Source: Schmidtea polychroa (lineage: Eukaryota). Taken from it: DNA of 64,000 bases. Position numbers and translations under genes: made by a program. Below are positions 15,581-53,771 of the stretch, piece after piece (the stretch's first letter is position 1; each line of letters begins with the position of its first letter). The notes under the pieces are model-generated. The model did no database searches and was not told where the DNA came from. It worked only from the letters and a program-made list of their open reading frames with translations. The stretch is taken from NCBI GenBank assembly GCA_044892525.1, contig CM097888.1:84568001-84632000 (forward strand), in the 5' to 3' direction.

Positions 15581-17872
15581 CAGTGGTTCCCAACCTATTT
15601 TGGCCTAGGGCCACTTTGTTTAGGTGGAGGACACGAAGGGCCAAAATTTTTGAAACAACAAAAAACGGCGAAGAAGAAACCTTATTGTGAGTTAATACCC
15701 TAGATGAAAAAAACCAAGATACTTTTTTTATATGACATAATTTACAATAATATTTTACAATTGGCAAATTCCTGATTAGTAACTTTAGTTTGGTAAATTA
15801 ATTTACAGAGATAAATATTGGTTTTTAACTTTTATAAAGAAACTGTGGATTAAATAGAACACCAATAAAGTCCAGAGATAGTGATTTTCGAAATAAATCA
15901 TTATCATAGTTAAAATATATTTATAATTTCAATAAAAATATTCACAGGCATTTGGATTTAATGTGAATTTTGTGGCTGAATACTAGAAGCCAGTTTTTCA
16001 ATGTCAGGTTGAAGTTTAGTTGTTGCCAGAATCATAAGTCCATTCAAGTTCGAATCAGTAAGGCGTGAACGATTCTTGCTTTTAATCAATTTCATTGCAG
16101 AAAATGACTGCTCGCATCTGTATGTGCTACCAAAACGACAAACATAACGTTGTGCAAAAGATCGCATATGTTCAAAGTCACTCTCTGGGAACAGGTTCCA
16201 TAATGATATCATATCATCTGCAGTTGGAATAACCGGAAGCTCGGTGAATCGACTTTTCAAAACTGAGTTACACTTCAGATCTATAATTTCAAGTTGCAAA
16301 TTCTCATCTAGGCAGTTGATCCTTTTGTCTGGAAAGTTGAAAGGATTGGTAAAAAGAGCCACATTGTCAGACTGATCTGCAAATTCACTGAATCGTGACT
16401 GAAAAGCTGTCAAAAGTTCGACAACCATACACCTATATTTGTCTTCATCAAAGTCATTACCTGTCATCCTTTCTTTCATGTTTCAAACAGATTGTTACTT
16501 GCTTGCAACTTCAAATTTAGATTGTTGAGATGCCCTGTAATGTCCACCAAGAATGCTAAATCATTCAGCCATTCATTATTTGAAAGATATTCACGTTCTA
16601 TAGGCAACTCATTAATTTCCGCCAAAAATTCCAAAATACTTCCTTTTAAATCCCAGAATCGCGACAGAACTTTACCTTTTGACAACCATCTGACCTCACA
16701 GTGCAGAAGAAGTTCACCATATTCAGCATCTAATTCTGAAGTAAACTGTCTAAATTCTCGCCTATGCAATGATTTTGCACGGATTTTGTTCACACACTTC
16801 ACTACTACATCCATAACGTGCTTCATATTCATGGATTTCCCACAAAGCGACTCCTGGTGAATAATGCAGTGATATTTTAAAAGTGGACGAGCAAGAAATT
16901 TTTCGAGCAAAGACAAACATCCTACATGTCTACCTGTTAGAGCTGGTGCACCATCTGTGCAAATGCTATCCAACCTTTTCCAATCCAATTTATTTTTTTC
17001 TGCGCATGATTTTAAAACCTCAAACAAATTTGTGCATTTGGTTGTCCCTTGTATGGACTCAAGTCCAAGCAGCTCTTCGATAACCTCGAAAGTATTACTC
17101 ACCGCGCGAATAAAAATTGTTACCTGTGCTTTCGCTAATGTCAGTTGACTCGTCCATTGCAAGTGAGAAAAACTTGCAGTTTGATGCGTGAAATGCAATT
17201 TGCTCACTAACGTTATTAGCAAGTTCCTCAACCCGTCTTCTCATTGTATTGTTCGATAGTGGAATATCTTTAAAATTGGCTTCAATGTTTTTTTCTCCTA
17301 GCATTCTGGCGGCTATTTCAAGAACTAGCTTCACAATCTCTTCTCCATCAGTAAAGGGTTTCTTCTTCTTTGCCAAAAGAAGTGCCACTTCATACGATGC
17401 AATTACCATACTTTTGTTTTGCTGTAATATAGCAGTAAATAAGGATTGTTGGACATTCATTCCTTTCTCCTTCTTGGCGATAAATTCCCTTCGTAAATCA
17501 GAGGCCATTGGATATTGATCGACCAAATCTGCATGGCTACTGTTGAAATGTCTTTCCATATTATATTTCTTTACAACTGAAACGCTTGAGCTCGCTTTTT
17601 AACCAAATTAGATAATTAAAAGAATTTATAAAAAAATCAGAAGATTGAAATAAAATCAGATTATTGATGAAAACCAAGCAAAATTAATCGATACACAATT
17701 CTTTTATTATAAAATTGGCATCTGGTTTTATCATGGTTTTATCATGGTTTTAAACGAAGTTCAAGACAAACTTTTCCCAAAGAAGGTGTGAATGTGAATT
17801 TTTTCTTAGTTTTCTTTGTTGAGGAGAGGGCCACTTTTTTATGCCCGGCGGGCCACGGGTTGGGAACCATTG
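15581..17872 (-). mobile_element. hAT transposon (Buster/SPIN/Charlie-like), 2292 bp
   Basis: TIRs CAGTGGTTCCCAACC / CAATGGTTCCCAACC and a perfect 8-bp TSD GCATAGAC (nnnTAnnn) at 15573-15580 and 17873-17880. Confidence 0.95.
15958..17580 (-). pseudogene. hAT transposase, frameshifted, N-terminal zinc finger truncated
   Basis: Motifs FSLAMDESTD, CTDGAP, HCIIHQ, HCEVRWLS and STYRCEQSFS are split over three ORFs. Confidence 0.92.
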
Positions 17873-19339: not shown

Positions 19340-19394
<55 letters not shown>

Positions 19395-19652
19395 TATTTG
19401 CATTCTCGCCAAAATTGAAATTCACTAATTCTAATGCAGTTCAGTTAAAAACTTTGTAAGTACGATTGAAAATTGTTTTAATATTTGCATTCTCGCCAAA
19501 ATTGAAATTCACTAATTCTAATTCAGTTCAGTTAAAAACTTTGTAAGTACGATTGAAAATTGTTTTAATATTTGCATTCTCGCCAAAATTGAAATTCACT
19601 AATTCTAATTCAGTTCAGTTAAAAACTTTGTAAGTGCGATTGAAAATTGTGT
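19340..19652. repeat. (TA)n tract followed by three tandem 87-bp units inside the hAT 5' region
   Basis: Unit AATATTTGCATTCTCGCCAAAATTG... starts at 19393, 19480 and 19567. Confidence 0.95.
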
Positions 19653-19783
19653 TTTCTTATTTTAGTATTATTTTTTGCTAAAAAAAAACTTATTTATATT
19701 TTTAGAAGACAATTATAATTGATTTCAAAAGGTAATTCATTAACAATTTTAATGATAAATAAATAATATGTTTCAACTTTAGA

Positions 19784-21696
19784 ATGTCAGAAAATAAGAA
19801 AAGGAAAACAGAGGCCAGCTCTAACAGACCATTTCAAGATTGGTGGACTGATAAATATGGAATGATGAAAAGCAATAACAATGCCCTGTGTGCGTTGTGT
19901 GGAAATACAGTAGTGTGCAGAACATCCTCAGTAAAACGTCATTATGAAACTACTCATTCATTTCTTTTATCTAAAAGTGATTCAGAACAAAAAGAATATA
20001 TTGCACGTGAAGTTAAAAATAAAAATTTCCAATCAAACTCATTCACTACATTTTTGAAACATACAAATTATTTAGTTGCTGCTAGTTTTGAGGTTTCCAA
20101 GACTATTGCTACTCATAGCAAACCATTTAGCGATGGAGATTATATTAAAGAAGCTTTCATTAAATGTGCACCACATTTATTTGAAGATTTTCAAAATAAA
20201 GAGCAGATACTTAAGCGCATTGAAGAATTAAGTATAAGTCGAAATACTGTTAAAGACAGGATATTAAAAATGCATAAAAATATTAATATTAAAAAAATAA
20301 ATGATATACGTTCAGCAAAGCTATTTTCTATATGTCTTGATGAAAGTACCGACGTAACATCTTCAGCTCGCTTGTCCATAATTGCTCGTTATGCTAAAGG
20401 AGAAAAAATAGTTGAGGAATTGCTTTCACTAGTTTCCTTATCAGCAAAAACAACTGGGAAAGATATTAGTGATGCAGTTATAAAAACGTTTCAAATAGCT
20501 GAGATAGATACATCAACAATAGTGTCAATTACAACTGATGGAGCTCCCTCAATGATAGGACGGCAAGCTGGTTTTGTATCTCTTTTTCAAGAACACGTTG
20601 GGCATCCAATTATTAATTTTCATTGTATAATTCATCAAGAAGTTCTATGTGCGAAGTCTGGATTGGCAGCATTTGATGATATTTTAAGTATTGTTTCCAA
20701 AATAATAAATTTTATAGCAGCTCGAGCTTTGAATAAGCGGCAATTTCAGTTGCTTCTACAAGAGGTAGGTTCAAATTATCATGGATTGTTAATGTATAAT
20801 CACGTACGCTGGCTTAGTAGAGGATTTGTGTTACAACGTTTTGTAGAATGTTTTGATGAAATTATCATGTTTCTTAATGATAAAAAACCGAATTTCCTGA
20901 ACTTTTTGATAATAACTGGATCACCAAATTAATGTTTTTAACGGATATTTCCAACCATTTAAATGAATTAAATATTAAATTGCAAGGTCCCGGAAAATCA
21001 ATTGATGTAATGTTCGATATTATTGAAGGTTTTGAGTCCAAATTAGTAATATTTAAACGCGATATTGACAACAATAATTTTAAGTATTTTCCTTTGTTGA
21101 AAGATCACCTTCAAAAATTTTCTATTCATGGAGTCTATGAAATTAATATAAATTTTTATAGCCAAGTTATAAGTGACATAAAAGACAATTTTGCTAATAG
21201 ATTTCAAGATTTCAAAAAATTTCAACCATTAATTAACTTTATTAAATATCCAGACAAGTTTGATATGGAAACTGCTAAAATTGATCAATTAGACTGGTTA
21301 CAGTTGGAGAATTTAGAAATGCAGTTGGCAGAGTTTCAATCAAGTTCTATTTGGAAGCTGAAATTTATAGAGTTAAGGCAAAAAATAGAAAATAATGAAA
21401 AAAAAAGATTAAATGAAGAAGAATACGAAAACATGAATAATATGTTGTTGAAGACATGGTGTTCGCTCCCAGAAACATTTAATGCGATGAAGAAATTGTC
21501 TTTAGCTATTCTAACAATATTTTCATCAACGTATAGCTGTGAAAGTCTATTTTCGATTATGAATAATATAAAATCTGATGTACGAAACAGACTTACCGAT
21601 GAATGTGGGGAGGCTTGTATTTCATTAAAATTGTCAAACTATGATCCGGATATTGATGCATTATCGAGAAATATTCAGCAACAAAAATCCCATTAA
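19784..21696 (+). pseudogene. hAT transposase with a single frameshift near the A-run at about 20882-20887
   Basis: CALC...RHY zinc finger, CLDESTDV, TTDGAP, HCIIHQ, VRWLSRG and STYSCESLFS. ORFs 19784-20932 and 20932-21696 join by one frameshift, which could be a homopolymer sequencing error. Confidence 0.9.
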
Positions 21697-21813
21697 AAAA
21701 CATGTCAGCATATTATAGAAATGAATCTATATATAATTTTTAAAAGCATGTATTTTCATTTAATAAAAATAATTTGTATTGGCACGCAGTCAAAAAAAGG
21801 TTCGCCATCCCTG

Positions 21814-23249
21814 GTCTTGAGCCTCTTAATTTCTATGGCATTCCCGGTATGTCATGGGCCTCAGCGCTTATGACATTAACGGAACCTATTGAACTTTTGC
21901 AGGACATGGAAATGTTTAATTTCTATGAAGGAGGGATACGGGGTGGGTTAACATTTGTTAACAAACATTATGTTGCTAGTTCTGAAGACACTAAACTCTT
22001 GTACATAGATATTAATAACTTGTATGGTTGGGCCTTAAGCCAAAATCTGCCTTATGCTGACTTTGTATGGGTGTATGATGATTTGGATATTATACTTTCT
22101 GAATGTGTGAATGATGATATTGATAACCTTCCATATGGGTATACTATGGAAGTTGATATCGATATACCCGAATGCTTGCATGACTTCCTTAATGACTTTC
22201 TTATTGCTGCGGAAAAGATGTGTCCACCGAACTCCAAAGTCGAGAAGCTGATGCTCACGCATTGGCCAAAGAAGAACTATGTTCTTCATTGGAGACTTCT
22301 TAAACTTTATCTTTCACTCAATGTGACGGTGGTTAAAATTTATAGAGCAGTTAAATTCACGCAAGCACCCATTTTTAAATCGTACATTGATAAAAACACA
22401 ACATTAAGAGCACAATCCACCAGTGAGTTATATAGAGATTTGTTTAAGCTTTATAACAACAGCTTATATGGGAAATCCGTTGAGAACTTAAAGAAAAGAA
22501 TGAATTTGAGGCTATGCAATTCAGCTGAAAAGATGATTGTATATGCCTCAAAGCCAACTTTCAGAAAATCTATCAAAATTGCTGATGATCTGATTGTGGC
22601 TCATCTGGATAAAGATTCTATATGTTTAGACAGGCCTAGCTATATTGGTCAATCAGTACTAGATTTGTCTAAACTAAGAATGTATCAACTACAATATGTG
22701 GAATTGGCCAAGTACAGGTCTAAATTTAATTGTGATATAAATATCGTTGCCGGTGACACTGACTCCTTTTTCTTAGAGATAAAGCATTGTAAGCTTGACA
22801 CTCTTTTGCCGGCAATGATTCGTGATAATCTTTTAGATACTAGCAACTATGACCCAACACATCCCTTATACTCTAGAAACCTTGATTCTGTGATAGGGAA
22901 GTTTAAGGATGAGAGTAAAGGTTTAGGGTATAAGGAATGGGTTTTCTTAAGACCTAAGTGTTATAGTTTGTTAGGGGATAAAGATCATTTAAAAGCAAAG
23001 GGAGTTCAGCTTGGTAATACTGAGATATGGCATCAGTCGTATTTAGACTGCTACAACAACAGCGTAGTATATACGGTGCCACAAACGAGAATAGGAACAC
23101 GCAACAACCAGCTCTTTACTTTTAAAAATAATAAAATAGCCTTGTCGAACAACGATGACAAGCGCCTTTGGGTGGGTCCTAATACCAGTCTCGCATATGA
23201 ACATTATTTAGGAGTCGATGTTCCAGATGTTGATCAAGTAATTTCATAA
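21814..23249 (+). pseudogene. Protein-primed family B DNA polymerase (Polinton/adintovirus type), 5'-truncated
   Basis: GIRGG, YIDINNLYGWAL, KLYNNSLYGKS, AGDTDS, GKFKDE, LRPKCYS and KAKGV motifs. It begins exactly at the hAT right TIR; the exonuclease half is missing. Confidence 0.92.
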
Positions 23250-23458: not shown

Positions 23459-24473
23459 TGTTTCGACCAGTCAGAGGGGGATTGCCTCTGACTGGCATTT
23501 ATTTGGTTTTTGTCTATCGCGTCTGTGTGCGCGGTCTGGTTAGACCGAATATTGTTGGTGTGCGCACACAGACGCGAGCAATGGATTGAATTGGTGGTGC
23601 AGTAAATTGTTAATTTTTATTGATTTTTTTTATGTATTGTTGGTAGAAATTCGAGAATTGGTTTTTGTTTTAAAAAAGGGAAATTCGAGAAGTTTTGTTT
23701 CGTTTGGTTTCAAGAAAATTTGGTGGTTTTTTAAAATTTTGAATCGTTTAAAAATTGGATGAAGTTCCTTGTTAAAATGGCTTCAAGTGTCAAATGTGAT
23801 CCTTCTTATTTCGATGAAACCAGTGAATTCATTGAAAATGGCAGAAAATTTAGTGGAGTATTGGTTCACTATCTTGCTGGAATCTCAAGTAGTGGAATTA
23901 TTTTGACGGCTTATTTAATGAAACATTTTAAAGTTGGTCCAAACGATGCGATTGAGACAATTAAGGAAAAGTCATTTAATATGTCCAAATGATGGATTCA
24001 TGAAACAATTAAAGATATATTTCAACATGAATTGCAGTGATGAAATCAACAAATGCGCAAATACAGTTTCTCAAGCTCAATTTAAGTTATCAGCATCTTC
24101 AAAAGATTTAGTTCAATTCAAATGTAGAAAGTGTCGATTTTTATTATTCGACAATTCAAGTGTTGTTGAGCACAGTAAAATGAAAGCTTCGAAAGCAATA
24201 AATGAAAGCACAATTTGCAATGAGGAAATACTTATCGAAGCTCTTCCTTGGATTGATAGCAGCAATGCAGACGGGGAAATGAAAATGACAGTGTTAAAGA
24301 ATAAAATTTTAATGATTTATTTGGATCTTATTCATGGTAGCAGAGCGTGGTTCCGGCTAGCCAGCCGGAACAAGGTAATAGATGATTGTATAATGTATTT
24401 TTTGTATTTACGTGATTATTTTGTGAATTATTTTATGAATTATAATATGTGTTATATTTTTATTGTTGAAACA
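23459..24473 (+). repeat. Putative 5' LTR (TGTTTC...GAAACA) including an embedded DUSP12 fragment
   Basis: Terminal inverted hexamer TGTTTC/GAAACA. Only the first about 320 bp are confirmed by the 3' copy, and no canonical TGG PBS follows 24473. Confidence 0.55.
23782..24285 (+). pseudogene. DUSP12: Intronless dual-specificity phosphatase 12 (YVH1-like) fragment
   Basis: [22 protein letters not shown] (HCxAGxSRS with C>Y and R>S), [22 protein letters not shown]...VVEH zinc-binding domain. One frameshift; C-terminus truncated. Confidence 0.85.
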
Positions 24474-24519
24474 TTTCCCCTAGGGCCTGCCCTCCCTAAC
24501 CCCATTAGAGGTGGATTGG

Positions 24520-24970
24520 CGCGGGTATTTGTCAAAATAATAACAGGGAAGACAATTACTCTCGAAGTTGAATCTAGTGACACGATAGAAAATGTTAAAG
24601 CGAAAATACAAGATAAAGAGGGTAGTCCACCTGACCAGCAACGATTAATTTGCGCGGGAAAACCATTAGAAGATGAGCGAACATTATCTGATTATAATAT
24701 TCAAAAGGAGTCTAATTTGCGTTTAGTTTTGCGATTGAGGGGTGGAATGCAAATATTCGTGAAGACACTGACAGGAAAAACAATAACTTTGGAAGTAGAA
24801 TCAAGTGATACTATTGAGAATGTAAAGGCTAAAATTCAAGAAAAAGAAGGGATACCCCCATGGCGACAAAGACTTAATTTTGCCGGGAAAGTATTAAAAG
24901 ATGGCCTAACGTTGTTAGATTATAACGTTAGGAAAGAAGCCACGGTACATCTGGTTTTGGGTCTGGCAGG
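24520..24970 (+). CDS. Two tandem ubiquitin units, in frame with downstream BEL Gag
   Basis: Unit 1: [33 protein letters not shown]...LVLRLRGG. Unit 2: [11 protein letters not shown]...HLVLGLAG. The ORF continues without a stop into Gag. Confidence 0.95.
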
Positions 24971-26860
24971 GATAAGTCCAGTATCAGATGCGGAGTTCGA
25001 GGCAGGTTACAAGAGACAAACCGGGTGGAAGATTTCGTTAGGGTGTCTACGTAACCGGGCCTTAGGAGATGGATCGGACCCTGGGGAAGATCAAAGGAGA
25101 ATGGAGGCTTACGAAGATAACTATGAGGAAGTGATAAACGAATTGGAGGAGCTGAGGAATAATGCTCGGGAGTTAGGGCGGGAGAAAGAAGAAAAGGAAA
25201 TTGAGGCAGATCTGAAACGGTTAGAAGCGGATTTCAGCAGAATCGGTGATCTGGTCCTCACGCAGAAGGAAGAGAGTTTTAGAGTGGAGTCGCGGAAGGG
25301 CACAGAAAAATCATTTAGGAGCGAAGAGCCCAATGAGAAACAGAAGTGCATAATGGGTTTGAAACCCTTGCAGCTGCCGATCTTTAATGGAAAGGTAATA
25401 GAATATCCTGGATGGAGGGCAATTGTGAGAGCCTGCATCGAGGACACGGATGAGCCGAGTACTTGTACCTGAGACAGTACTTGGAAGGGAAGCCGCTGCA
25501 ATTAATTGCCTATATTGGATATGGCTCGCAGGCTTTCGAGGCGGCGATAAAATTACTTGATGAAAGGAAAGGGGGGACCAGAAAGATCCTATTACATGAT
25601 TCTGGATGCGGTGCAGAGGTTCTTTCCAGTGCGGCTGAACGTACTGGAGGACCTAGAGCGGTTTGAAGAGCTGCTGGGAAACCTCATCCTGAATTTCAAG
25701 GATCAGAAGAGGGAAGGCGAGTTGAACAACGGAATGTTGTATCACCAACTGCTGAAGAAGCTTCCAGAGACCATGCTGATTCAGTGGTCACGCCATTGTG
25801 ATTCGGGGAGAGAGGGAAATGTGCAAACGCTAGCCGAGTGGATCAAAACGGAAGCTAATAGGCATCGGCAAGCAATGAGCATTCTGTTTGGAGAAGGGCG
25901 GGCAAAAGGTAGAACTGTCGCCCCAACAACTAACTTCGGAAATGCGAATAGGGGCACGAAGTTTACGGATAGTAGGCGCAAGATAGAGGTTAGCAGTGCT
26001 CGAAAAAAGGAACCAATTTGTGTGAAATGTGGTTCAGAACATTATTTAAATCAATGCTCAGAGTTCCTAAAGCTGACTGTTAAGGAACGAAATGAGTTTG
26101 TGACCAAGAAGCGGCTTTGTTACAATTGTCTTACAACAGCTCACATGGTTAGAGAATGCGAAAAACCGAGCTTTTGTAAGGACAGAGATTGTACTCGAAA
26201 GCATCACAATTTGCTCCATGGCTCAGAGAACAAAGTTGATGGAGATCAAGAGCCGAGCAATGAGAACACATCAATGATGACGGTTCAAGATACACAGAGG
26301 AAGAAGATGTATGTTCCTTTACGAACGATTACAGCAAAGTTGATTAATAAAGGAAAGGAGATCAAGATCAACGCCTTGCTAGACGACGCAAGCAATGTTA
26401 GCTATATTAGCGATTGGGCGGCGCAAGAACTGGAGTTGGGAGGACAGTGGCAAAGCACTCCAGTTGGCGTGATTGGTGGACAATCACAAATGTTGGAAAC
26501 GAAGCCAGTAACGGTATTATTGGCAAGTAACAATAACAATTTAAAGGTAAATTTGAACGTCCTGGTGGTAAAAAAGATCACTGGAGACCTGGGAATGTGT
26601 AACTGGAGGAAGTTATCGACGAAATGGAAGCATCTGCGATATATAAACTTCCCGGTTATGAATACAAGGACGCAGATTGATGTATTGATTGGTTCTGATT
26701 ACCCATATCTACATCGATCTATTCGCGAAGTAACAGGAGCAAAGCATGAACCAATTGCAAGGTTGACGCCCCTCGGATGGACATGTCTTGGTAGGATTGC
26801 AAGGAATCAAGCTCCAAGATGTTCGCATTTGGCTCAGAGTTATTTTGCGGTAACGGAAAT
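24971..26860 (+). pseudogene. BEL/Pao Gag-protease, two frameshifts at about 25460 and 25575
   Basis: [87 protein letters not shown] and RLTPLGW. Confidence 0.9.
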
Positions 26861-27580
26861 GTTAAACGTCGGAGAAATGATTATTCATGATGTAGATAAT
26901 TCTGAAGAAATGGATTATATTAAAGAATGGGATGAAAATGATGAAACACATGAAAACAAAAATGCTAGCGAAGATGGAGATAGTGAAAGCAATGAATGTG
27001 ATAATTTACAATCTACCGATATTATAAATCAAGATGAAATAGAGCAAAATCGAGTCAATGAGAACGAGAATCAGTATTCTGAATTTGTAAAAAATAATAC
27101 TGAACTATTAGACAACGATTTTGATAAAGGAGACCAAGTTACAGCAGATGAATTAGAAAATATTGTCAAAAGTCACAATCAAGAAGAAAATTTTGAAAGT
27201 AAATATGATGAAACTGAAGTAGATGTGTCAGAAAAGAATGAAAATTATAATAGTCATGTAGGCACAGAGGTTGTCGACATTAATGTTATCGAAAGACCGA
27301 ATTCTTTGGTAGAAGATAATTTTCAAAACATGGAAGACGTAGTTAATGTTCAAACGGATTCTGCTTCTTCAGAAAATCATTTAGAAACTGATCGAATTAT
27401 GCCAGATTCTGAGAGCAATGACAGTGATCTGAGAGTCGATATTGGTAAAGATCATACGTCCGACACAGCTAAAGATTCTGAACAAAATACATTCACTCAA
27501 CCAACGTCTGCTTTAGATGATATCATTGCAGACTATTTACCTGGTTCCCCTTCATTAAATGAAATGCAACAGGGAAAAGT
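26860..27580 (+). other. Acidic, AT-rich in-frame ORF segment replacing RT/RNase H/integrase
   Basis: About 240 D/E/N/S-rich codons in frame with Gag-PR and a compositional shift. It is followed by a short integrase-tail-like remnant (QDGCVR...KFPLK). Confidence 0.7.
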
Positions 27581-28141
27581 GGGGACTATTGAATTGGCGA
27601 AAAATGAAGGAAGAAGAATGGAGATATTGCACCTAAGCAGAATGAAAAGTGGCAGGGGCTTGGTCGAGTATGGCGATGGTGGGGGGAGAATCCACCATGA
27701 TGTATCCAGAAAGGTGCGTGGTGCGGCGGCCTATACCATAGCAAGATGGGTGTGTGAGGGATATTGGAGAGATGCGAACAGAAAGTTTCCCCTGAAGTAA
27801 TTGGGTGGTTGATCCGCTAGAAGGGATCAAGGAGGGGGGAAATGTTTCGACCAGTCAGAGGGGGATTGCCTCTGACTGGCATTTATTTGGCTTTTGTCTA
27901 TCGCGTCTGTGTGCGCGGTCTGGTTAGACCGAATATTGTTTGTGTGCGCACACAGACGCGAGCAATGGATTGAATTGGTGGTGCGGTAAATTGTTAATTT
28001 TTATTGATTTTTTTATGTATTGTTGGTAGAAATTCGAGAATTGGTTTTTGTTTTAAAAAAGGGAAATTCGAGAAGTTTTGTTTCGTTTGGTTTCAAGAAA
28101 ATTTGGTGGTTTTTTAAAAATTTGAATCGTTTAAAAATTGG

Positions 28142-28734
28142 ATGAAGTTCCTTGTTAAAATGGCGTTTATTTCATGGATGAAATATCATTTTAGTGATGA
28201 TTCTGATAGCAAAATTGAGAATTGTGCCAATCTTGAAGATTTTGAGATGTTTTTAAGAAAGATTCCATCAAATATTAATTACCCTTGTGTATTGTCAAAT
28301 AATTGGACAGCAAATTGTGAGTTTGCGCTCCTCGTGGTCAAATGTAATCTTCTACAATCTTCTGTAGAAATGCTTTCTAATACAAAATTGTTTTGGAATT
28401 TATTAGACGATAATAAAATTCAATATATTGCCTTATCTGTGGTTGATGTTGACGGATCTATGATTTACAAGTTACGCAATATTGCGAGTCTCAATCAATC
28501 AGGAGTTCAATTAGCAAAGGAAACGAGATATTTATGCATTGTGGCTACAGGAAGAATTTCTTTTACTATAACGAGCGATGTGATAAAATCAAACTTAGAC
28601 TTTATGAAATCGGATCATGACTTAAGTGATGAGGTTTATGTAAATTATGATTTCGAACAGATCATTCAATGCTGTGAAATTTTGTTGCCACATAGAGCCG
28701 ACTCCATCGAGTCTATTTCGAATAAAATTGTTAT
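28142..28734 (+). CDS. Unidentified intronless ORF starting at the LTR-internal ATG, open into the gap
   Basis: About 190 stop-free codons in AT-rich DNA. The first 8 codons (MKFLVKMA) are LTR-derived. No family was recognised. Confidence 0.45.
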
Positions 28735-39339: not shown

Positions 39340-42300
39340 AATCTAAATTCACTAAAATCAAGATTTTCTACAAATATTTCACCCCATAAAATACCTAACT
39401 AGAGATGATATATATTGATTGATCATAATTCTTCATCTATTCAGCCAATCATTTTAAAGCAATTATAGAAAACTAAACAACAAATTTCAGTATATCTTAC
39501 AATAATTTTCAAGTAGATTTCAAATATCTATCCTTGATAAAGTTAACTGGTTTCTTGGCTTATGATTTTTAAAAGTTCATCAATGTGTAAATGGAAATAC
39601 TCTTAGAAAATTATTGAGAAAAAATAATTATTTAGTCAATTTCAATATCATTACAAAGTCATCAAAACTAATCATATCAATTGATTATCGACTGTTATTA
39701 AAATTAATTTTTATTTAAAATTCAAAAGCTTATCACTAAAAAATACTGATAATTATCAAGAAATTAATTAAATTTACCTTAGAATTAAAATGAAAACTTT
39801 TAATATTCTTTAAAAATACTTTAAAATTTATTAGAATCGCCATTAAAATCTTAAATTTTAAAAATAACCTAACTGTCTTTAAAATTAATTTTTATTTAAA
39901 ATTTAAAAACTTATCACTATCATTATCATTAAAATTAATTAATTTATCAATTAAATTTATTAGAATCGCGATTTAACTTAACTGTCATTAAAATTAATTT
40001 TTATTTAAAATTTAAAAACTTTTTTATTTGAATCGCCATTAAAACCTTAAATTTCAAAAATAACCTAACTGTCATTAAAATTAATTTTTATTTAAAATTT
40101 AAAAACTTATAATAATACATCAAAATATCAAGAAATCATATAAATTTATCAATTATTAGAATCGCCATTAAAACCTTAAATTTTAAAAATAACCTAACTG
40201 TCATTAAAATTAATTTTTATCTAAAATTTAAAAACTTATCGCTAAAGAATACTGATAATTATCAAGAAATTAATTAAATTTACCTTAGAATTAAAATGAA
40301 AACTTTAAATATTCTTTCAGTCATCATGAAATTTCTAGAAAACTATTGAAAAATATATTTAGTCAAATTCAATATCATTACAAAGTCATCATCAAAAATT
40401 AATCCTATTACTTGATTATTAGCCTAACTGTCATTAAAATTAATTTTTATTTAAAAATAATAAACAACTCAATAAAATACATCAAAATATCAAGAAATTA
40501 TATAAATTTATCAATTAAATTTATTAGAATCGCCATTAAAACCTTAAATTTTAAAATATTCTTTCAGTCAATATGAAATTCACAAAAATGTTAAATATTT
40601 CCTAAAACCATTAGCTCTAAAAAATTACTAATGAATGCCTTAGACACCAAAATTTATCTAAATAATCTTTCAAATTAATTCATTAAAATTGAAGACAAAT
40701 CGCTGGAATTTGTCATTAAATTCAATTAAAATTAAATAAATCAAGATTAGAACTTTTGATAAAAAATATTATTCTAAAATGGTAAGAATTAACACTGTAT
40801 TGTTAAATGGAAAGATAATTATTCTTTAAATCTAATTAACTTAGTCATAATTTTCTTTAATTATTACTACCAATTCTCATCATCTTTCAAAATTTATTAC
40901 TTAATTTTAAATTGCATCCTTTAATTTACTTAATTTAAATTTTATCATTTAATTTACGAAATATAGCCTTTAATTACTTCTTTTTTTAAAATATAGCTCT
41001 TATTATTATTTAATAAAATATCTATTTAAATTTGTCATTGAAAATTATTTCATAAAAATTTGCATCTCAAATTGTCAATTCTCATTGATTTCAAAAATAT
41101 CTGACAATAAATTATTACAGTAATTTTAAAATGTTTACTTTAATTTACTTAATTTAGAAATATAACTATATAATTTAAAAATTTTATAATTTTAGATCTT
41201 AATTTACCTATTTATCTTTAATTTACTTTAATTTAACCCTTTATTTACTTAATTTAACCTTTGCTTACCAAATAGTCATTAATTTACTTTAATTTTTAAC
41301 TTAAGTTTAAAATATAGAGCCTTGATTACTTTTTTTTTAAATTTATCCCTTAATTTACATAATTTATATCTAAATTTATTTCAAAAAAATTTTTATCTAA
41401 AATTGTCATCGAAAAATATTTCATAAAAGTTTTCATTTAAATTTTTTTTTTCTCATCAGATGATAGTTATTCAAAATATCTGACAATAAATTATTAATTT
41501 AATTAAAAATTTTACATTAATTTACTTTAATTTAAAAATTTAGAACTTAATTACTTAATTTAGAATTTTAGACTCTAATTACTTAACCTTAATTCATCTA
41601 TTTAATTTATTTTACTTAATTTTAAAATTTGGTCCTTAAATTACTAATTTGAACTCATTGATTATTTTAATTTAAAATTTAGTCATTAATTAACTTAATT
41701 GAACATTTTAGACCTTAATTACTTAGTTTAAAATTTTAGACCATAATTTACCTATTTATCATTAATTTACTTTAGTTTAATTTTAGATCCTTGATTAATT
41801 CAATTTAAAAATTTATATCTTAATTTACTTAATTGAAAATTTTAGACCATAATTTACCTATTTATCATTAATTTACTTTAGTTTAATTTTAGATCCTTGA
41901 TTAATTCAATTTAAAAATTTAGACCCTTAATTTAATTTAATTGAAAATTTTAAACCTTAATTTGCTTATTTATCCTTAATTTACTTAAGTTTAAAAATAT
42001 AGACAATAATTTACTTTAATTTAAAATTTAGCCATTAATTTACTTAATTGAAAATTTAAGACCATAATATTCATGTGAAATTGTCATTGAAAAACATTTC
42101 ATTTCTCAGGCACTGTTTAGTAGGTAGGCAGAGATGTTAGATAAATTGGGTGGAGCAAAGTATTTCAGTTCGATAGATCTTGGAAATGCATATTATCAAG
42201 TAGAACTAGAAGATGAATCAAAGATAAAAAACGGTGTTTTCAACCAAATCAGGTCAATTTAGGACTAGATTTTAAAGTTCAGTAAATTAAGGTTAAATTT

Positions 42301-46210: not shown

Positions 46211-49200
46211 TGTTGAGGTCTCACTATTTGAGATTCCAAACTTTACAGGTTTTTATAAATATAGTGTTGGATACAGGGAAAATAATTTAGGCTCAATCCT
46301 AAGCTACCTTCATGACTTGCCATCGATCTCCTTTACGTGTGCCCTTGTTGACAAATCAGGTTGGTGATACGCACGCAGCTCGGAACTTGCGAGCAGGTGA
46401 GCCCCTGTGTTAGGACTACTCTCAATATTCACAGTACGGGTTCCTGAGTGCCGATAGTAGGACTTACCTCTTCACTGATTCGCTAGCCTGGCACATCACC
46501 GGTCTAATTCTTATAACTTTATTATAATAAAAAATAAAAACCTTCAAAGATTTCGCGAACGTTCATAAATTAAACAGAATTGTCATCCAAACATTTCATT
46601 TTTTTATTTCTAATCCCAATTTCCATATCGATTTCTTTTTTATTTTTAATTTTACTATAGTAAATTATCGCTATATAGTTTTTTTAAAAAATCTGGATTT
46701 CCCAGATAGTGGCATTTTATATTTTAGTATTCACAATTCCTAATTGTGAACACTAAAATATTAACAAAAATAGCTGTACATTACATATGTAATTATCAAA
46801 TAGGTATCTGTAGGAATCCTTGTAGAGTTTCCGCCTATTTGATAGTCTTTTTAGTTGTTGGTTATATACATTATAATTCCTCCAATTTAAACTTATCTTT
46901 CTATAAACTATTTTAATATGTACTTATATTCGCTACAAACATCACCAACGGAGTCTTCCTACTCCAATCTCTTACATCCTATCTAGAATGAACGTATCCT
47001 GATAAACCGCAAAAATATGTCACCAGAACCTAATTTGATGAAAATACCGTACCAAACTAACCGGATTTACCCACCAAACCAACTTAACTGGATTAATCTC
47101 AGAAAATCAAATGGATTCAAAATTACACTTATCCTTGGAACCTAAATTCAAGTAAACCAATTTAATCTTGACAAAAACTACAACAATATACCGGACCAAA
47201 TTAACCGAATTAGCTTCCAAACCAAATGGATTAATTACAACTGAATTCAAAATTACACTTGTTCCTGGAATCCAAATACAATTCAACCAAAGTACAAATG
47301 ATGGAGCTTTGGCTCCTCATTCAGAGATTTAAAAATTAAGAAACTTAGAAATTCAAGGGTGATAATTTTTATTGAAATAAAATTTGATTTTTTTTTGCAT
47401 ATTCCTAGGAAGCTTCTCAGATTCTTGACACATTTTGGCTTTTCAAATGATTTAATCGCGTCTAGCTCTGACGGGTTCGTTTGTATTCCATCTTTGTTTA
47501 TTATGTGACCTAAATATTTCACTTCCTCTTTAAGGATATGGTACTTTTCAGGGTTTATCCTAAGACTCGCTTTTCTAATTTTGTCCAGCACTTCATTTAA
47601 AACTTCGCATTGATGATTGATCGTTTCTGTATATATATAAATATCATCTAAGTAAACTGCTGCATATCTCGTACCCATTAATACTTTTCCCATCAGTTCC
47701 TGAAACATACCTGGTGCCGCTGCTATTCCAAATGCCATTCTGTTCAAACAGTATTGCCCTGATTTGGTTGAAAACGCCGTTTTTAACTTTGATTCGTTCT
47801 CTAATTCTACTTGATAATATGCATTTCCAAGATCTATCGAACTGAAAAACTTTACTCCACTAAATTTATCTAACATCTCTGTTATATTTGGCATAGGAAA
47901 CGCCTGTCTCTTTGTTACTGGGTTTAATTACCTGAAATCAAGGCATAATCTGATATCCTGCTTTTCTTTCTTCCAGACGCATATTAATGGAGTGTTCCAT
48001 GGCGAATTACACTTTTTGATAATATTGTTTTCCCATAAGTTTTTATCGCTTCATCTGTTTTACCTTCCAAGTTGACTGGTTGTCTCCAAGGTTTAATATT
48101 TATCGGTTTTCCTTGAGTTTCTATTTTATGCTTCAACAGCTTTTGGCAGCCAATGTCCCATTTATCAGCCAAAAAAACATTTGATTCTTTTTTATAATGT
48201 TTAGTAGTATCGGGTTATTTATCTTTAAAGTATTCTTTGGTTTTTGAAATCGTTCCATCTCCGTTATTGTCTTCAGACATTTGGCTTCGATAATGCACAT
48301 GTGCTCTTGCGTCGTTTTCTTGACCTCTTCTTTACTTGACCTCTTCGTCACTTTAGTTGTATACCAAATTGTTTTTGCAACTCTATACAACCAATTACCT
48401 CTGGAGTCATATATCTTACTCTCGTAAATTTTACCCTTCTTTTCCTGCAATTTATTCCTATTTCTAATATTGCTTTACCTTTCGTTTCTAAAACACTATT
48501 ATGTATCAGTCGTTGTTGTTAGTTCTACATCTTTAAGTTTCTCAAATTTACACTAACTCATGACATTTACTGTAGCTCCTGTATCGAGCAGGCATTCCAT
48601 CTTCTGGTCTTGTATTTTAATAGTTACACTTGGTCGGCCTTGCATTTTGTTGAGGTCTGTAAATTAAAATAAATTTAAATATTACGATGTCCAGATTTTA
48701 CGAAACTATTTATCTTGATGACGGATGCAAGCAATGTTGCATTGGGCGTGGTGTTGGGCCAAAAAATTAAAGGTGAAAAGGACCACGTAGTAGCATACGC
48801 AAGCAGATCACTGAGATCTCATGAGAAAAACTACTCATCTATTGAAAAGGAAACGTTAGCGTTAGTGTGTGGAATTACTACTTTTAGACAATATTTATTG
48901 GGCAGGAAATTTACTGTTTATACGGATCATAATCCACTACAGTGGTTAATGAAACACAGAGATTCAGCCAGTAAGTTAATTCGATGGTCGATTGCCCTCC
49001 AAGAATACGATTTTGAGATTAAATATCGGACAGGTAAAGCTAACGCAAATGCAGATGCAACGTCAAGAATCCCAGAAATTGATAGCGAAGGAACACCTGA
49101 AAAATTGGAAGGTACTGTTGAGGTCTGTAAATTAAAATGAAATTTAGGTTAATAAGTGAAGAGAAAAGACAAATAAAAGCGGGATCATGCACAGAATTGA

Positions 49201-51245: not shown

Positions 51246-53771
51246 CACTAGGACGGCCGGAAATATTTTATACCTTGGAAGGCCAAACCGGTCAATTTGA
51301 CCGGTGCACATATGCTCCTTATTTTCATGCTGAGATTTCTATGATGCAACTCATTTAGCAATACTTTCTTTGTGCTACTAACACGCTTTCAAAATTTAAC
51401 TATTTTTATTCTAACAGTAGTTAATTTATTAAACTACTTACAACAATGAAATAAAAATATTTGTTTAGCTGACACAAAGCTACACTATTTTAAACATTGT
51501 CTTCGCGTTTATTCAGACTGGTATGTATGTATACTTCATTTCTTGTTTATAAATATTCTCTTGCTTTTATTCAAAGATAGTGCTTATTAAAAGTGTAATT
51601 AAGCAAGAATTAAGAGTTCTAAGTTTTGAAATTTGGTAAATTAAAAGAATCAAACGAAAACCTTAACGAAATGTCATAAGACAATATCTAATAATTGTTA
51701 TAGAAAATCTTTGAACTTCTTGGGATAACAAACATTATAAAACCGTGTTTTCATTAGAATCCAATAATAAATTTAACGTTTCTTATTTTACTGACGGAGT
51801 TTTTATCATTATTTTAGAATCAAATATGCCAACTAAAAGAATTGCTGCTCAACGTGCTTTACAGAAGCTATGGAATATTGACGCTGCTCTCTCCGAAGAT
51901 GAAGATCAGCCTATGGGAAGTGATGATGAGCCCGAAAGAAATGATTCTGACGAAGAGTTACATGAATGGAACTCTGATGATAATGGAAGTTCGTTAGAAA
52001 GTGACAATGAGTCAGTTAATAGCTCAATTTCTTCATTAGAAAATCAGCTTTTATCTAGCAGGGATGGCACTCTTTGGAATCGAGTAGAAAACAATCACGC
52101 TATTAGTGTTGGCAGATTCCCCGCGCACAATATTTTTAGTGGAACACCTGGTGTGAAAGCTTTTGCAAAGCGCAAAATTGACTCGCCCCTGAGCGCTTGG
52201 CGCTTGATAGTCTCTGAGGGAATGCTGAAGTTAATTCAAAAATACACAATTATGAAAGGAAAAGAAGCTTCGTCAGACTGGTGTATCAGTCTACAAGAAT
52301 TAGATGCTTTTCTTGGATTGCTTTATCTCCGTGGTGTGTTAGGCTTTCGCCGACATTCTATCAATTCAATCTGGTCATCTCAATTTGGATCTCCTTACTT
52401 CAGAGAAGTCATGTCTCGGAACCGTTTCTGTGAGATACTGCGCTTTCTTCGTTTTGATGAACAATGTTCTCGACGTCAAAGAGTAGAACAAGATAAATAT
52501 GCCCATTTTCGTGAAATATTTGACTTGTTTGTTTCAAACTGTCTTCAAGTTTATGCTCCTAATCCCTTCCTTACTGTCGACGAGCAACTTTTGCCGCTAA
52601 AAAATAGGTGTTGCTTCATCCAATTTATGCCAAATAAGCCTGATAAATTCGGTATCAAATACTGGATTCTCAGTGATGTCAAAACCAAATTTGTCATCAA
52701 TCAAATGCCATATTTAGGGGCTCACGATAGAAACGAACGCTGTGGATTACGGCTGGGTGATTTTGTAGTCAGGAAACTAATGGATCCATTTTTCAATAAA
52801 GGATACAATGTCTGCACTGACAATTTCTTTACAAGTCTCTCACTAGCTGAACATCTCCTTGTAAATCGAACAACATTGGTTGGTACTGTAAGATTAAATT
52901 CACGCTTTTTATCATCAGCTCACTTGGAGAAAAAGCCTCTTTTTGAATCGACTCATTTATCGTGTCAAAACACTGTCACTGTTTCCTATCAAGGCAAATC
53001 GGACAAGAAAGTCATTGTCATGTCAACATTCCATTCTACTGCTAGTATGAGATCTGACGAAAAGAGAAAGCCTGAAATGATACACTTTTATAACAAAAAT
53101 AAGACAGCTGTAGATACCATGGATAGCATGTTGCGTTTATACAGCAGTAAAGCCGCAACAGCAAGATGGCCAGTCGCTACTTTCTATGATTTGTTTGATA
53201 AAGCAGCTCTCAACGCTCATGTTATTTTCAAAGATGCTACGGGATCAACTATAAAAAGAAGGGATTTTATTTTTGAATTAGCTACATCTCTTTGTGAGGA
53301 GTTCAAAAGCCGTCGAACAGCAAGTCCCATCTCTGGTGAACTCTGTTCTGAACAACCAAAATTAAAGAAGCGAAAAACTTGTTCTGCTCCTCATTGTGAT
53401 AACAAATCCGGAGCTATATGCCATGTATGTAGTAAAGTTTACTGTGGAAAACATTCCCAAATGACTGTTAAATGATTCGGTTGTGTGTAAATTATATTTG
53501 GTTTTATATTTTCTAGTATGTAAGATGATTATGTGTGACTTTCTTATGTGTTTCAAGATACCGGTCAAATTGACCGGTTCGGCCTTCCATGGGGATGGCC
53601 TCATTATCTCAGTCGTGACAAATGCTATAATTGAAGCTTTGATATGCACAACAAGTTCACTAAAAATGAATAATTGTCACAAAATATGAGACGTTAATTC
53701 CTTTTCGTTTCCTCACAAAATAAAAATGAAATTGCTTAACGGTCAAAATGACCGCTCTGGCCGTCCTAGTG
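51246..53771 (+). mobile_element. Full-length piggyBac transposon, 2526 bp
   Basis: TTAA TSD, 13-bp TIR CACTAGGACGGCC, and 30-bp subterminal inverted repeats containing ACCGGTCAATTTGACCGGT. Confidence 0.96.
51826..53475 (+). CDS. piggyBac transposase, uninterrupted ORF (about 549 aa)
   Basis: D-D-D triad in TVDEQ, CTDNFFTS and AVDTMD; KPDKFGIK; C-terminal Cys-rich domain C..C...C..C...C..H. Confidence 0.95.
   Translation: MPTKRIAAQRALQKLWNIDAALSEDEDQPMGSDDEPERNDSDEELHEWNSDDNGSSLESDNESVNSSISSLENQLLSSRDGTLWNRVENNHAISVGRFPAHNIFSGTPGVKAFAKRKIDSPLSAWRLIVSEGMLKLIQKYTIMKGKEASSDWCISLQELDAFLGLLYLRGVLGFRRHSINSIWSSQFGSPYFREVMSRNRFCEILRFLRFDEQCSRRQRVEQDKYAHFREIFDLFVSNCLQVYAPNPFLTVDEQLLPLKNRCCFIQFMPNKPDKFGIKYWILSDVKTKFVINQMPYLGAHDRNERCGLRLGDFVVRKLMDPFFNKGYNVCTDNFFTSLSLAEHLLVNRTTLVGTVRLNSRFLSSAHLEKKPLFESTHLSCQNTVTVSYQGKSDKKVIVMSTFHSTASMRSDEKRKPEMIHFYNKNKTAVDTMDSMLRLYSSKAATARWPVATFYDLFDKAALNAHVIFKDATGSTIKRRDFIFELATSLCEEFKSRRTASPISGELCSEQPKLKKRKTCSAPHCDNKSGAICHVCSKVYCGKHSQMTVK

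Follow-up and report, generated by a model that had tools for sequence, protein, structure and literature searches.

Ubiquitin in frame with Gag in a defective BEL/Pao element of Schmidtea polychroa and in related loci

A 64,000-nucleotide stretch of the Schmidtea polychroa genome (assembly GCA_044892525.1, contig CM097888.1, positions 84,568,001 to 84,632,000; henceforth the window, in whose coordinates all positions are given) carries a long terminal repeat (LTR) retroelement of the BEL/Pao group in which two ubiquitin units run directly into Gag, with all parts of the element on the + strand. The locus raises the question of whether such a junction is an accident of one copy or a property of a lineage and, in the latter case, what ubiquitin might do in front of Gag. 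We found the same junction in six other loci, and the ubiquitin-Gag fusion thus appears to be an inherited feature of a lineage that is not private to the window copy. On balance, we favor a reading in which the element of the window is a defective member, without Pol, of a ubiquitin-bearing BEL/Pao lineage, whose ubiquitin would serve as a hinge that is cut by host deubiquitinases to free Gag and that has been patched by host polyubiquitin.

A ubiquitin-Gag junction shared with related loci

Positions 24480-25472 form a single open frame in which the Pfam ubiquitin profile (PF00240) matches two stretches over the whole beta-grasp domain (E 7e-54). As canonical reference for residue counts and tblastn we used residues 1-76 of protein P0138; this unit recovered both stretches (E 1e-39 and 6e-37) and found no further ubiquitin elsewhere in the 64-kb window. 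Unit 1 lies at 24516-24746 (a Leu codon followed by 76 residues at 24519-24746, the first codon being without Met) and is preceded by the stub IRGG (24504-24515), left over from the C-terminal tail of another unit. It differs from canonical ubiquitin at 12 evenly distributed positions, retains K48, K63 and I44, and ends in LRLRGG. Unit 2, at 24747-24974, begins with MQIFVK, retains L8, K29 and K48, carries I44N, and ends in LVLGLAG followed by Ile as residue 76, so that its tail reads GLAGI (R72G, R74A and G76I) and has no Gly-Gly. Over codons 1-38 the two units are separated by 21 synonymous and 7 non-synonymous codon differences, with synonymous divergence saturated. An AlphaFold single-sequence model of the units, of low confidence (mean predicted local distance difference test score 48.6), showed only the beta-beta-alpha-beta pattern, twice. 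Directly after unit 2, the N-terminal piece of Gag matches the full-length BEL/Pao polyprotein P0235 (E 2.5e-10). The locus therefore has the architecture that the initial annotation had read from it, namely two ubiquitin units in frame with a BEL Gag, with an intact tail on unit 1, an altered tail and I44N on unit 2, and mostly synonymous differences between the early codons of the units. It does not resemble a host polyubiquitin gene, since the units carry 12 and 15 changes, a primer-binding site (PBS) lies before them, and Gag follows in frame.

The initial annotation had called for a search for other copies of the junction, and had named a single-copy retrocopy or a misassembly as the outcome that would speak against a natural fusion. 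We drew relatives from public metagenomes and scanned their contigs with a Gag-protease alignment, which yielded 80 more BEL loci. A ubiquitin-like domain stands at the same colinear Gag junction in six other loci, from a set comprising L001, L004, L005, L006, L007, L008 and L027, in which L004, L005 and L006 represent one family; intact full-length elements are among them. The idea of a natural fusion is thereby upheld, and that of a single-copy retrocopy or misassembly contradicted. The closest relative, P0151 (38% identity), is encoded on L001, and directly upstream, abutting Gag, lies a gene with a ubiquitin domain ending in LALYGG. BLASTP aligned the window frame with L001 colinearly through the junction without a gap (32% identity over 247 residues, E 4e-30). 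P0235, on L005, combines ubiquitin, DUF1759, DUF1758, RVT_1, Peptidase_A17 and integrase domains in one frame of 1838 residues, and P0156, on L004, falls into the same 90% cluster. In the L005 element, a canonical-like distal unit with one stop inside it is separated by about 105 residues from a proximal domain that has diverged strongly and ends in LRLRGG just before Gag; L006 is a third copy of this family, with an intact proximal domain. Among the 80 further BEL loci, ubiquitin upstream of Gag was found only in L007, L008 and L027 (Pfam E 1e-9, 5e-10 and 3e-19), in frames of 918, 2162 and 2541 residues, the latter two uninterrupted through to the integrase. Three relatives (1838, 2162 and 2541 residues) thus present long uninterrupted polyprotein frames with the full BEL/Pao domain set, and Pfam scores for ubiquitin in the relatives range overall from E 5e-21 to 5e-6.

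In a six-way alignment, the domain and the first residues of Gag stay in register without any shift. A profile built from eight units detected ubiquitin in no other of the 86 related BEL loci, nor in 63 related proteins. Other searches, with the junction or with the Gag N-terminus, were less informative: a word-indexed search with the Gag N-terminus alone gave no match, the coiled-coil region being too divergent; a profile of three junctions matched only the L001 protein itself and ordinary ubiquitin proteins; and a search with unit 2 plus the Gag N-terminus returned matches dominated by polyubiquitins. Ten open reading frames of the window had no exact counterpart in the protein collection searched. 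A quick neighbor-joining tree placed the ubiquitin-bearing elements on neighboring basal branches, apart from a large clade without ubiquitin.

Two of the relatives have assembly features of their own. The 3' end of the L001 scaffold (2300-3048) is GC-rich and bacterial-looking, and the scaffold may therefore be chimeric. L005 shows a polypurine tract, an LTR of about 450 bp and then a second PBS and leader (6729-7271), which suggests a tandem or wrap-around assembly, and its LTR contains 45-nt tandem repeats inside the open frame.

Gly-Gly tails, mosaic units and an open frame through the primer-binding site

The initial annotation had held that the unit next to Gag is non-cleavable. This is true of the window copy, in which, as sequenced, a deubiquitinase-type tail stands only at the boundary between units 1 and 2, so that any product would consist of unit 2 fused to Gag. 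It does not extend to the lineage: all relatives keep Gly-Gly at this boundary. Every Gag-proximal domain has Gly75 and five of the six have Gly76, while seven of all eight units end in Gly-Gly, the exception being unit 2 of the window. The proximal domain of L005 retains R72-L73-R74-G75-G76 although no more than 15 of 76 residues match ubiquitin; its matches in the PDB are ISG15 and ubiquitin chains. Lysines are not conserved in the diverged domains. Ubiquitin-like domains that remain uncleaved inside proteins usually lose their Gly-Gly tail, and we therefore read its retention as a sign of selection for cleavage by host deubiquitinases. Given the Gly-Gly that every relative has next to Gag, what the lineage conserves is more likely a cut between ubiquitin and Gag, with the non-cleavable unit 2 being peculiar to the window lineage or copy.

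The differences in unit 2 are unevenly spread. Of its 15 departures from canonical ubiquitin, one lies in residues 1-38 and 14 in residues 39-76, so that the halves match at 37 of 38 and 24 of 38 positions (Fisher p 2.7e-4). The L027 domain shows the same asymmetry (33 of 38 versus 13 of 37, p 4.5e-6); each of the two is a mosaic whose first half is canonical-like. In L001, L005, L007 and L008, divergence is spread evenly over the domain. Since the part shared by the two LTRs differs by only 1.5%, unit 2 should have acquired most of its 15 changes, the loss of its tail among them, before this insertion. In the mosaic units one can read how element RNA has recombined with an abundant host mRNA.

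The frame that contains ubiquitin does not begin with it. The 18-mer TGGTAGCAGAGCGTGGTT at 24335-24352 occurs upstream of Gag, with at most two mismatches, in 47 of the 86 related BEL loci and follows directly after the LTR in L005; we therefore identify it as the PBS, which sets the end of the 5' LTR at 24334. In all five ubiquitin-bearing elements that contain a PBS (window, L005, L007, L008 and L027) it is read in the ubiquitin frame as GSRAW, and the frame is open for 86-540 codons upstream of it and for 176-2032 codons downstream. Among ubiquitin-less loci, only five of 43 PBS sites are open for at least 300 codons downstream. In L005, an ATG inside the LTR opens the frame that runs through the PBS, and in the window the ATG at 23759, within the stretch common to both LTRs, does the same. 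The proposal that ubiquitin forms the N-terminus of the Gag protein is thus not borne out: with the frame open upstream through the PBS into the 5' LTR, ubiquitin is predicted to lie inside a longer product. The fronts of these products vary and are partly derived from host genes, being dual-specificity phosphatase (DUSP)-like in the window, TRAF-like in L027, tubulin-like in L001, and made of repeats in L005 and L008. In L027, which is otherwise complete, positions 527-2127 upstream of the PBS encode TRAF-type zinc fingers (E 5.8e-9), a weak match to a TRAF RING and a coiled coil, so that the element carries a TRAF-like host signaling adaptor in frame. In L001, a fragment resembling the C-terminal part of alpha-tubulin (128-330) lies in frame upstream of the ubiquitin-like domain, after a splice-acceptor-like site.

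Two smaller observations concern these fronts. In L008, tandem repeats of 30 nt and 54 nt (3-318 and 574-735) are translated in the front of the polyprotein. A short CYGPQ-like motif lies between the PBS and the ubiquitin domain in L005, L007 and L008, with YGPR at this place in L027 and LGPA in the window (24484-24500).

A candidate host-cut hinge, its rivals and its precedents

How might these parts work together? The polyprotein frame would open in the 5' LTR, run via the PBS and leader through one or two ubiquitin or ubiquitin-like domains, and enter Gag directly. Cellular deubiquitinases, which process polyubiquitin and ubiquitin-ribosomal protein fusions in this way, would cleave after the Gly-Gly tail and release Gag or Gag-Pol with a defined N-terminus from the variable, partly host-derived product of LTR and leader. 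With such a hinge, Gag would not depend on what is encoded in front of it. The domain itself would be old, and on at least two occasions host polyubiquitin sequence would have replaced part of it, probably through template switching during reverse transcription. While the minus strand was being made, synthesis may have jumped from the domain of the element to a host polyubiquitin mRNA and come back at a non-homologous site further upstream; such a detour would account for unit 2 being a mosaic, for the additional complete unit 1 and for the remnant of a third unit. We infer the cleavage, its purpose and the recombination route from what we observed, namely the anatomy, its conservation, the retained Gly-Gly, the frame through the PBS and the mosaics.

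Several points weigh against this reading. Deubiquitinase cleavage is a prediction from sequence, from a Gly-Gly tail on a folded domain, and the tails of L001 (LYGG), L007 (VGGG), L008 (QGGG) and L027 (FGGGG) differ from the LRLRGG preferred by most deubiquitinases; the element's own protease could do the cutting. The Gag-proximal unit of the window is without Gly-Gly, and the hinge can thus be dispensed with at that boundary. In the tree, the ubiquitin-bearing elements are not resolved as one clade: the window and L001 group with 32% bootstrap, and the ubiquitin-less L077 falls among them. The relatives are metagenome contigs, of which at least L001 looks chimeric at its 3' end. A dN/dS comparison of two copies of the L005 family gave 0.011/0.061 for the ubiquitin-like domain, from only five differing codons, which are too few. 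Finally, the model leaves unexplained why the LTRs of the window copy cease to match after 323 bp.

A bolder form of the hinge reading, which we entertain as a possibility and hold tentatively, would make ubiquitin a universal hinge cut by the host and the LTR/leader front a cargo slot. Host-derived domains such as the TRAF-like RING and zinc fingers or the DUSP-like fragment could then be exchanged without disturbing Gag, and the hinge would now and then be renewed by recombination with host polyubiquitin mRNA.

Could the element instead have captured host ubiquitin repeatedly, each time for a short while, at a permissive site before Gag, with no single old domain retained? Canonical-like sequence in the units of the window, in the distal L005 unit and in the first half of the domain of L027 would fit such events, as would a tree that resolves no single ubiquitin-bearing clade, and pestiviruses show independent ubiquitin insertions at hotspots (PMC13517609). 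Domains that match ubiquitin at only 15-35 of 76 residues (L005, L007, L008 and L001), however, cannot be recent captures, the junction and the first Gag residues align without a shift, and the mosaics fit the patching of an older domain. We consider repeated capture unlikely.

Similarly improbable, in our judgment, is that the domain tunes the amount or the folding of Gag, either as a chaperone in cis, the role known from ubiquitin-ribosomal protein fusions, or, where uncleaved, as a ubiquitin-fusion-degradation signal. Ubiquitin fusions raise the yield of their partners, and an uncleavable N-terminal ubiquitin destabilizes them; unit 2 of the window keeps K29 and K48 and cannot be removed. 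Neither role, however, needs the Gly-Gly tail that strongly diverged domains have kept, and the lysines are not conserved in these domains.

The initial annotation had favored yet another outcome, in which cleavage between the units leaves Gag with a permanent N-terminal ubiquitin-like domain that could promote budding or recruitment of the endosomal sorting complex required for transport (ESCRT), or alter particle behavior. The loss of Gly-Gly in unit 2, while unit 1 keeps LRLRGG, speaks for such a design, and ubiquitin fused to a retroviral Gag can drive budding (PMC2958808). However, the engineered fusions placed ubiquitin at the C-terminus of Gag and needed both L8 and I44; unit 2 has L8 but carries I44N, and thus lacks the intact patch of a late-domain surrogate. 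Moreover, the five other Gag-proximal domains all keep Gly-Gly, no env gene or membrane-targeting signal was seen, and the window copy is defective. The case for a role in ESCRT recruitment or budding is weak, and we regard a permanent domain as quite doubtful. Least of all do we credit a one-off, be it a host polyubiquitin retrocopy or pseudogene abutting a BEL fragment or a misassembly: the window has a single copy, assembly gaps lie nearby and the LTRs disagree beyond 323 bp, but the units sit between PBS and Gag inside a putative LTR pair, and the same colinear junction recurs in six independent loci, including long uninterrupted polyprotein frames, which makes such an origin very improbable.

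The favored reading, a ubiquitin hinge cut by host deubiquitinases, has its nearest natural counterpart in pestiviruses. In cytopathogenic strains (bovine viral diarrhea virus Osloss and others), host ubiquitin has recombined into a polyprotein directly upstream of a viral protein, an arrangement like the present one; the cut is made there by host ubiquitin hydrolases. These insertions comprise one or two copies, often as mosaic or partial units, and arise independently at hotspots (PMC13517609). Pestiviruses are, however, RNA viruses whose insertions are sporadic in single animals and are not inherited, whereas the domain described here precedes the Gag of a germline retroelement and is kept among elements whose Gag-protease regions have diverged down to about 33-38% identity. 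A second comparison is with cellular ubiquitin fusion genes, in which an LRLRGG tail is directly followed by the next polypeptide and processed by deubiquitinases. Unit 1 of the window and the distal unit of L005 resemble these, and the head-to-tail arrangement is shared, but the units of the lineage lie inside LTRs between PBS and Gag, and the Gag-proximal domains are far more diverged.

Fusions made in the laboratory have ubiquitin covalently in line with Gag as well. In those of prototypic foamy virus and equine infectious anemia virus, ubiquitin was placed at the C-terminus, Gly-Gly was removed on purpose, and budding depended on L8/I44 (PMC2958808). The fusion in our lineage is natural, N-terminal and mostly retains Gly-Gly, and the one unit that is without it carries I44N.

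Compared with canonical BEL/Pao elements (Belpaoviridae), the lineage has the same order of DUF1759 Gag, zinc knuckles, DUF1758 protease, reverse transcriptase, Peptidase_A17, RNase H and integrase, and its PBS 18-mer is that of 40 ubiquitin-less loci; it differs from them in its ubiquitin, absent from the 63 related proteins and 79 other loci, and in a frame that elsewhere rarely crosses the PBS. A frame crossing the PBS is familiar from Ty1, whose Gag frame begins inside the 5' LTR and reads across it. Ty1 belongs to a different superfamily, however, and here the LTR encodes a long part (86-540 codons) that is variable, with ubiquitin standing between it and Gag. Host-derived coding fragments in frame (DUSP, TRAF and tubulin) recall transducing retroelements, such as retroviruses with oncogenes and plant LTR elements with gene fragments. 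Unlike in those, the fragments sit upstream of the PBS in LTR or leader and do not replace gag, pol or env, and the L027 polyprotein is complete.

In the literature searched, where coverage of subscription journals was thin, we came across no account of ubiquitin being naturally fused to Gag in BEL/Pao elements. The design has apparently not been described before, in agreement with the initial annotation, which knew of none. Retroviruses and LTR retrotransposons are thought to cut their polyproteins with their own protease, and an inherited ubiquitin before Gag would add a step carried out by a host enzyme. It would be the first natural, long-lived counterpart of both the pestivirus insertions and the ubiquitin-fusion trick of the laboratory. 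The frame opened in the LTR, with its host-derived domains, bears on how retroelements acquire and express cellular genes. For annotation, it follows that ubiquitin matches beside DUF1759 should not be dismissed as polyubiquitin pseudogenes.

Anatomy of the window copy and its surroundings

The element in the window is a defective, non-autonomous or deleted derivative of its family and not a complete member, as reverse transcriptase, RNase H and integrase are missing and its Gag is broken by two frame changes; a fusion protein of this kind is probably no longer made from it. The 5' LTR (23459-24334) starts with TGTT and ends with TTCA before the PBS. Its first 323 bp recur as a direct repeat at 27843-28164 (98.5% identity), where TGTT again marks the start, and this repeat is what the 3' LTR has in common with the 5' LTR. 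Beyond it the copies diverge completely: after the same ATG..ATGGC, the 5' LTR continues into a phosphatase fragment and the 3' LTR into an unrelated frame. On the 5' side, ATG codons at 23759 (in the shared part) and 23777 open the frame MKFLVKMA... The DUSP fragment at 23782-24300 (3' bound approximate) matches Pfam DSPc (PF00782) at 23804-23986 (E 2.7e-11) over profile positions 57-118 of 133, and therefore only the second half of the catalytic domain. The position of the catalytic-loop Cys is occupied by Tyr and one frame change breaks the fragment; its sequence matches in the PDB are DUSP10, DUSP7 and DUSP6, at about 1e-8. On the 3' side, sequence unrelated to the 5' LTR (28165-28734) continues the frame from the LTR ATG at 28142, open for 197 codons up to an assembly gap; this open reading frame (28142-28734) has no Pfam or PDB match. 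The rest of the 5' LTR found no match downstream of 28164, and the run of Ns starts about 16 bp beyond the expected end of an 876-bp LTR. The mismatch could stem from a deletion, from a misjoin, or from recombination of family members that carried different LTR cargo.

Between PBS and ubiquitin, the leader or linker (24353-24503) is open in the ubiquitin frame. It includes an AT-rich stretch at 24376-24483 bounded by splice-site-like GT..AG; we did not adopt an intron here, because the stretch is open in this frame and the relatives have long coding leaders.

Gag and protease (24975-26849) form a broken gene of three colinear pieces with two frame changes; the pieces match residues 219-854 of the 1838 in P0235. 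An N-terminal coiled-coil region is followed by a DUF1759-type core (PF03564 in the homologues), two zinc knuckles (26019-26057 and 26118-26159), the protease motif LLDDAS (26376-26393, invariant in the alignment with the relatives) and the motif PIARLTPLGWTC at the end of Gag-protease (26751-26786). The piece with the C-terminal part of Gag and the protease finds 63 relatives with DUF1759, DUF1758, Peptidase_A17 and RVT_1 (best E 1e-85). Direct Pfam matches on the broken pieces are weak and below the cut-offs (Asp_protease_2 0.009, DUF1758 0.07). Reverse transcriptase, the Peptidase_A17 region, RNase H and integrase are absent from the window copy but present in the relatives P0235, L008 and L027; BEL-like similarity ends at 26849-27050 and does not recur anywhere else in the window. 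In place of Pol lies an acidic tail (26850-27800) of 316 codons rich in Asp, Glu, Asn and Ser (24% Asp plus Glu), with no family or homologue match, which may be captured or decayed sequence. Only non-significant, though colinear, matches to a Pol C-terminus appear just before the polypurine tract GAAGGGATCAAGGAGGGGGGAAA (27820-27842), which abuts the 3' LTR as an analogous purine run precedes the LTR of L005. With PBS and polypurine tract, a DUF1759-type Gag with zinc knuckles and a DUF1758-type protease, the window copy shares these features with BEL/Pao elements.

The surroundings in the window are a mosaic of other mobile elements. They comprise two remnants of hAT-type transposases (19784-21696 on the + strand and 15958-17231 on the - strand; dimerization domain E about 3e-6), a piggyBac-type transposase (51745-53475, +; DDE_Tnp_1_7 E 9e-68), a reverse transcriptase fragment (47283-47894, -; RVT_1 E 6e-25) and an open reading frame with a zinc knuckle in a GC- and A-rich stretch (8081-9193, +). 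A frame of 491 codons at 21774-23249 (+) is reminiscent of the family B DNA polymerase of Maverick/Polinton elements (YGK.. and ..DTDS..), unconfirmed by Pfam or PDB search. The window further contains an 87-bp unit in three tandem copies of 97-100% identity (19393-19653) and a 2-kb stretch with 16.5% G+C (40001-42000).

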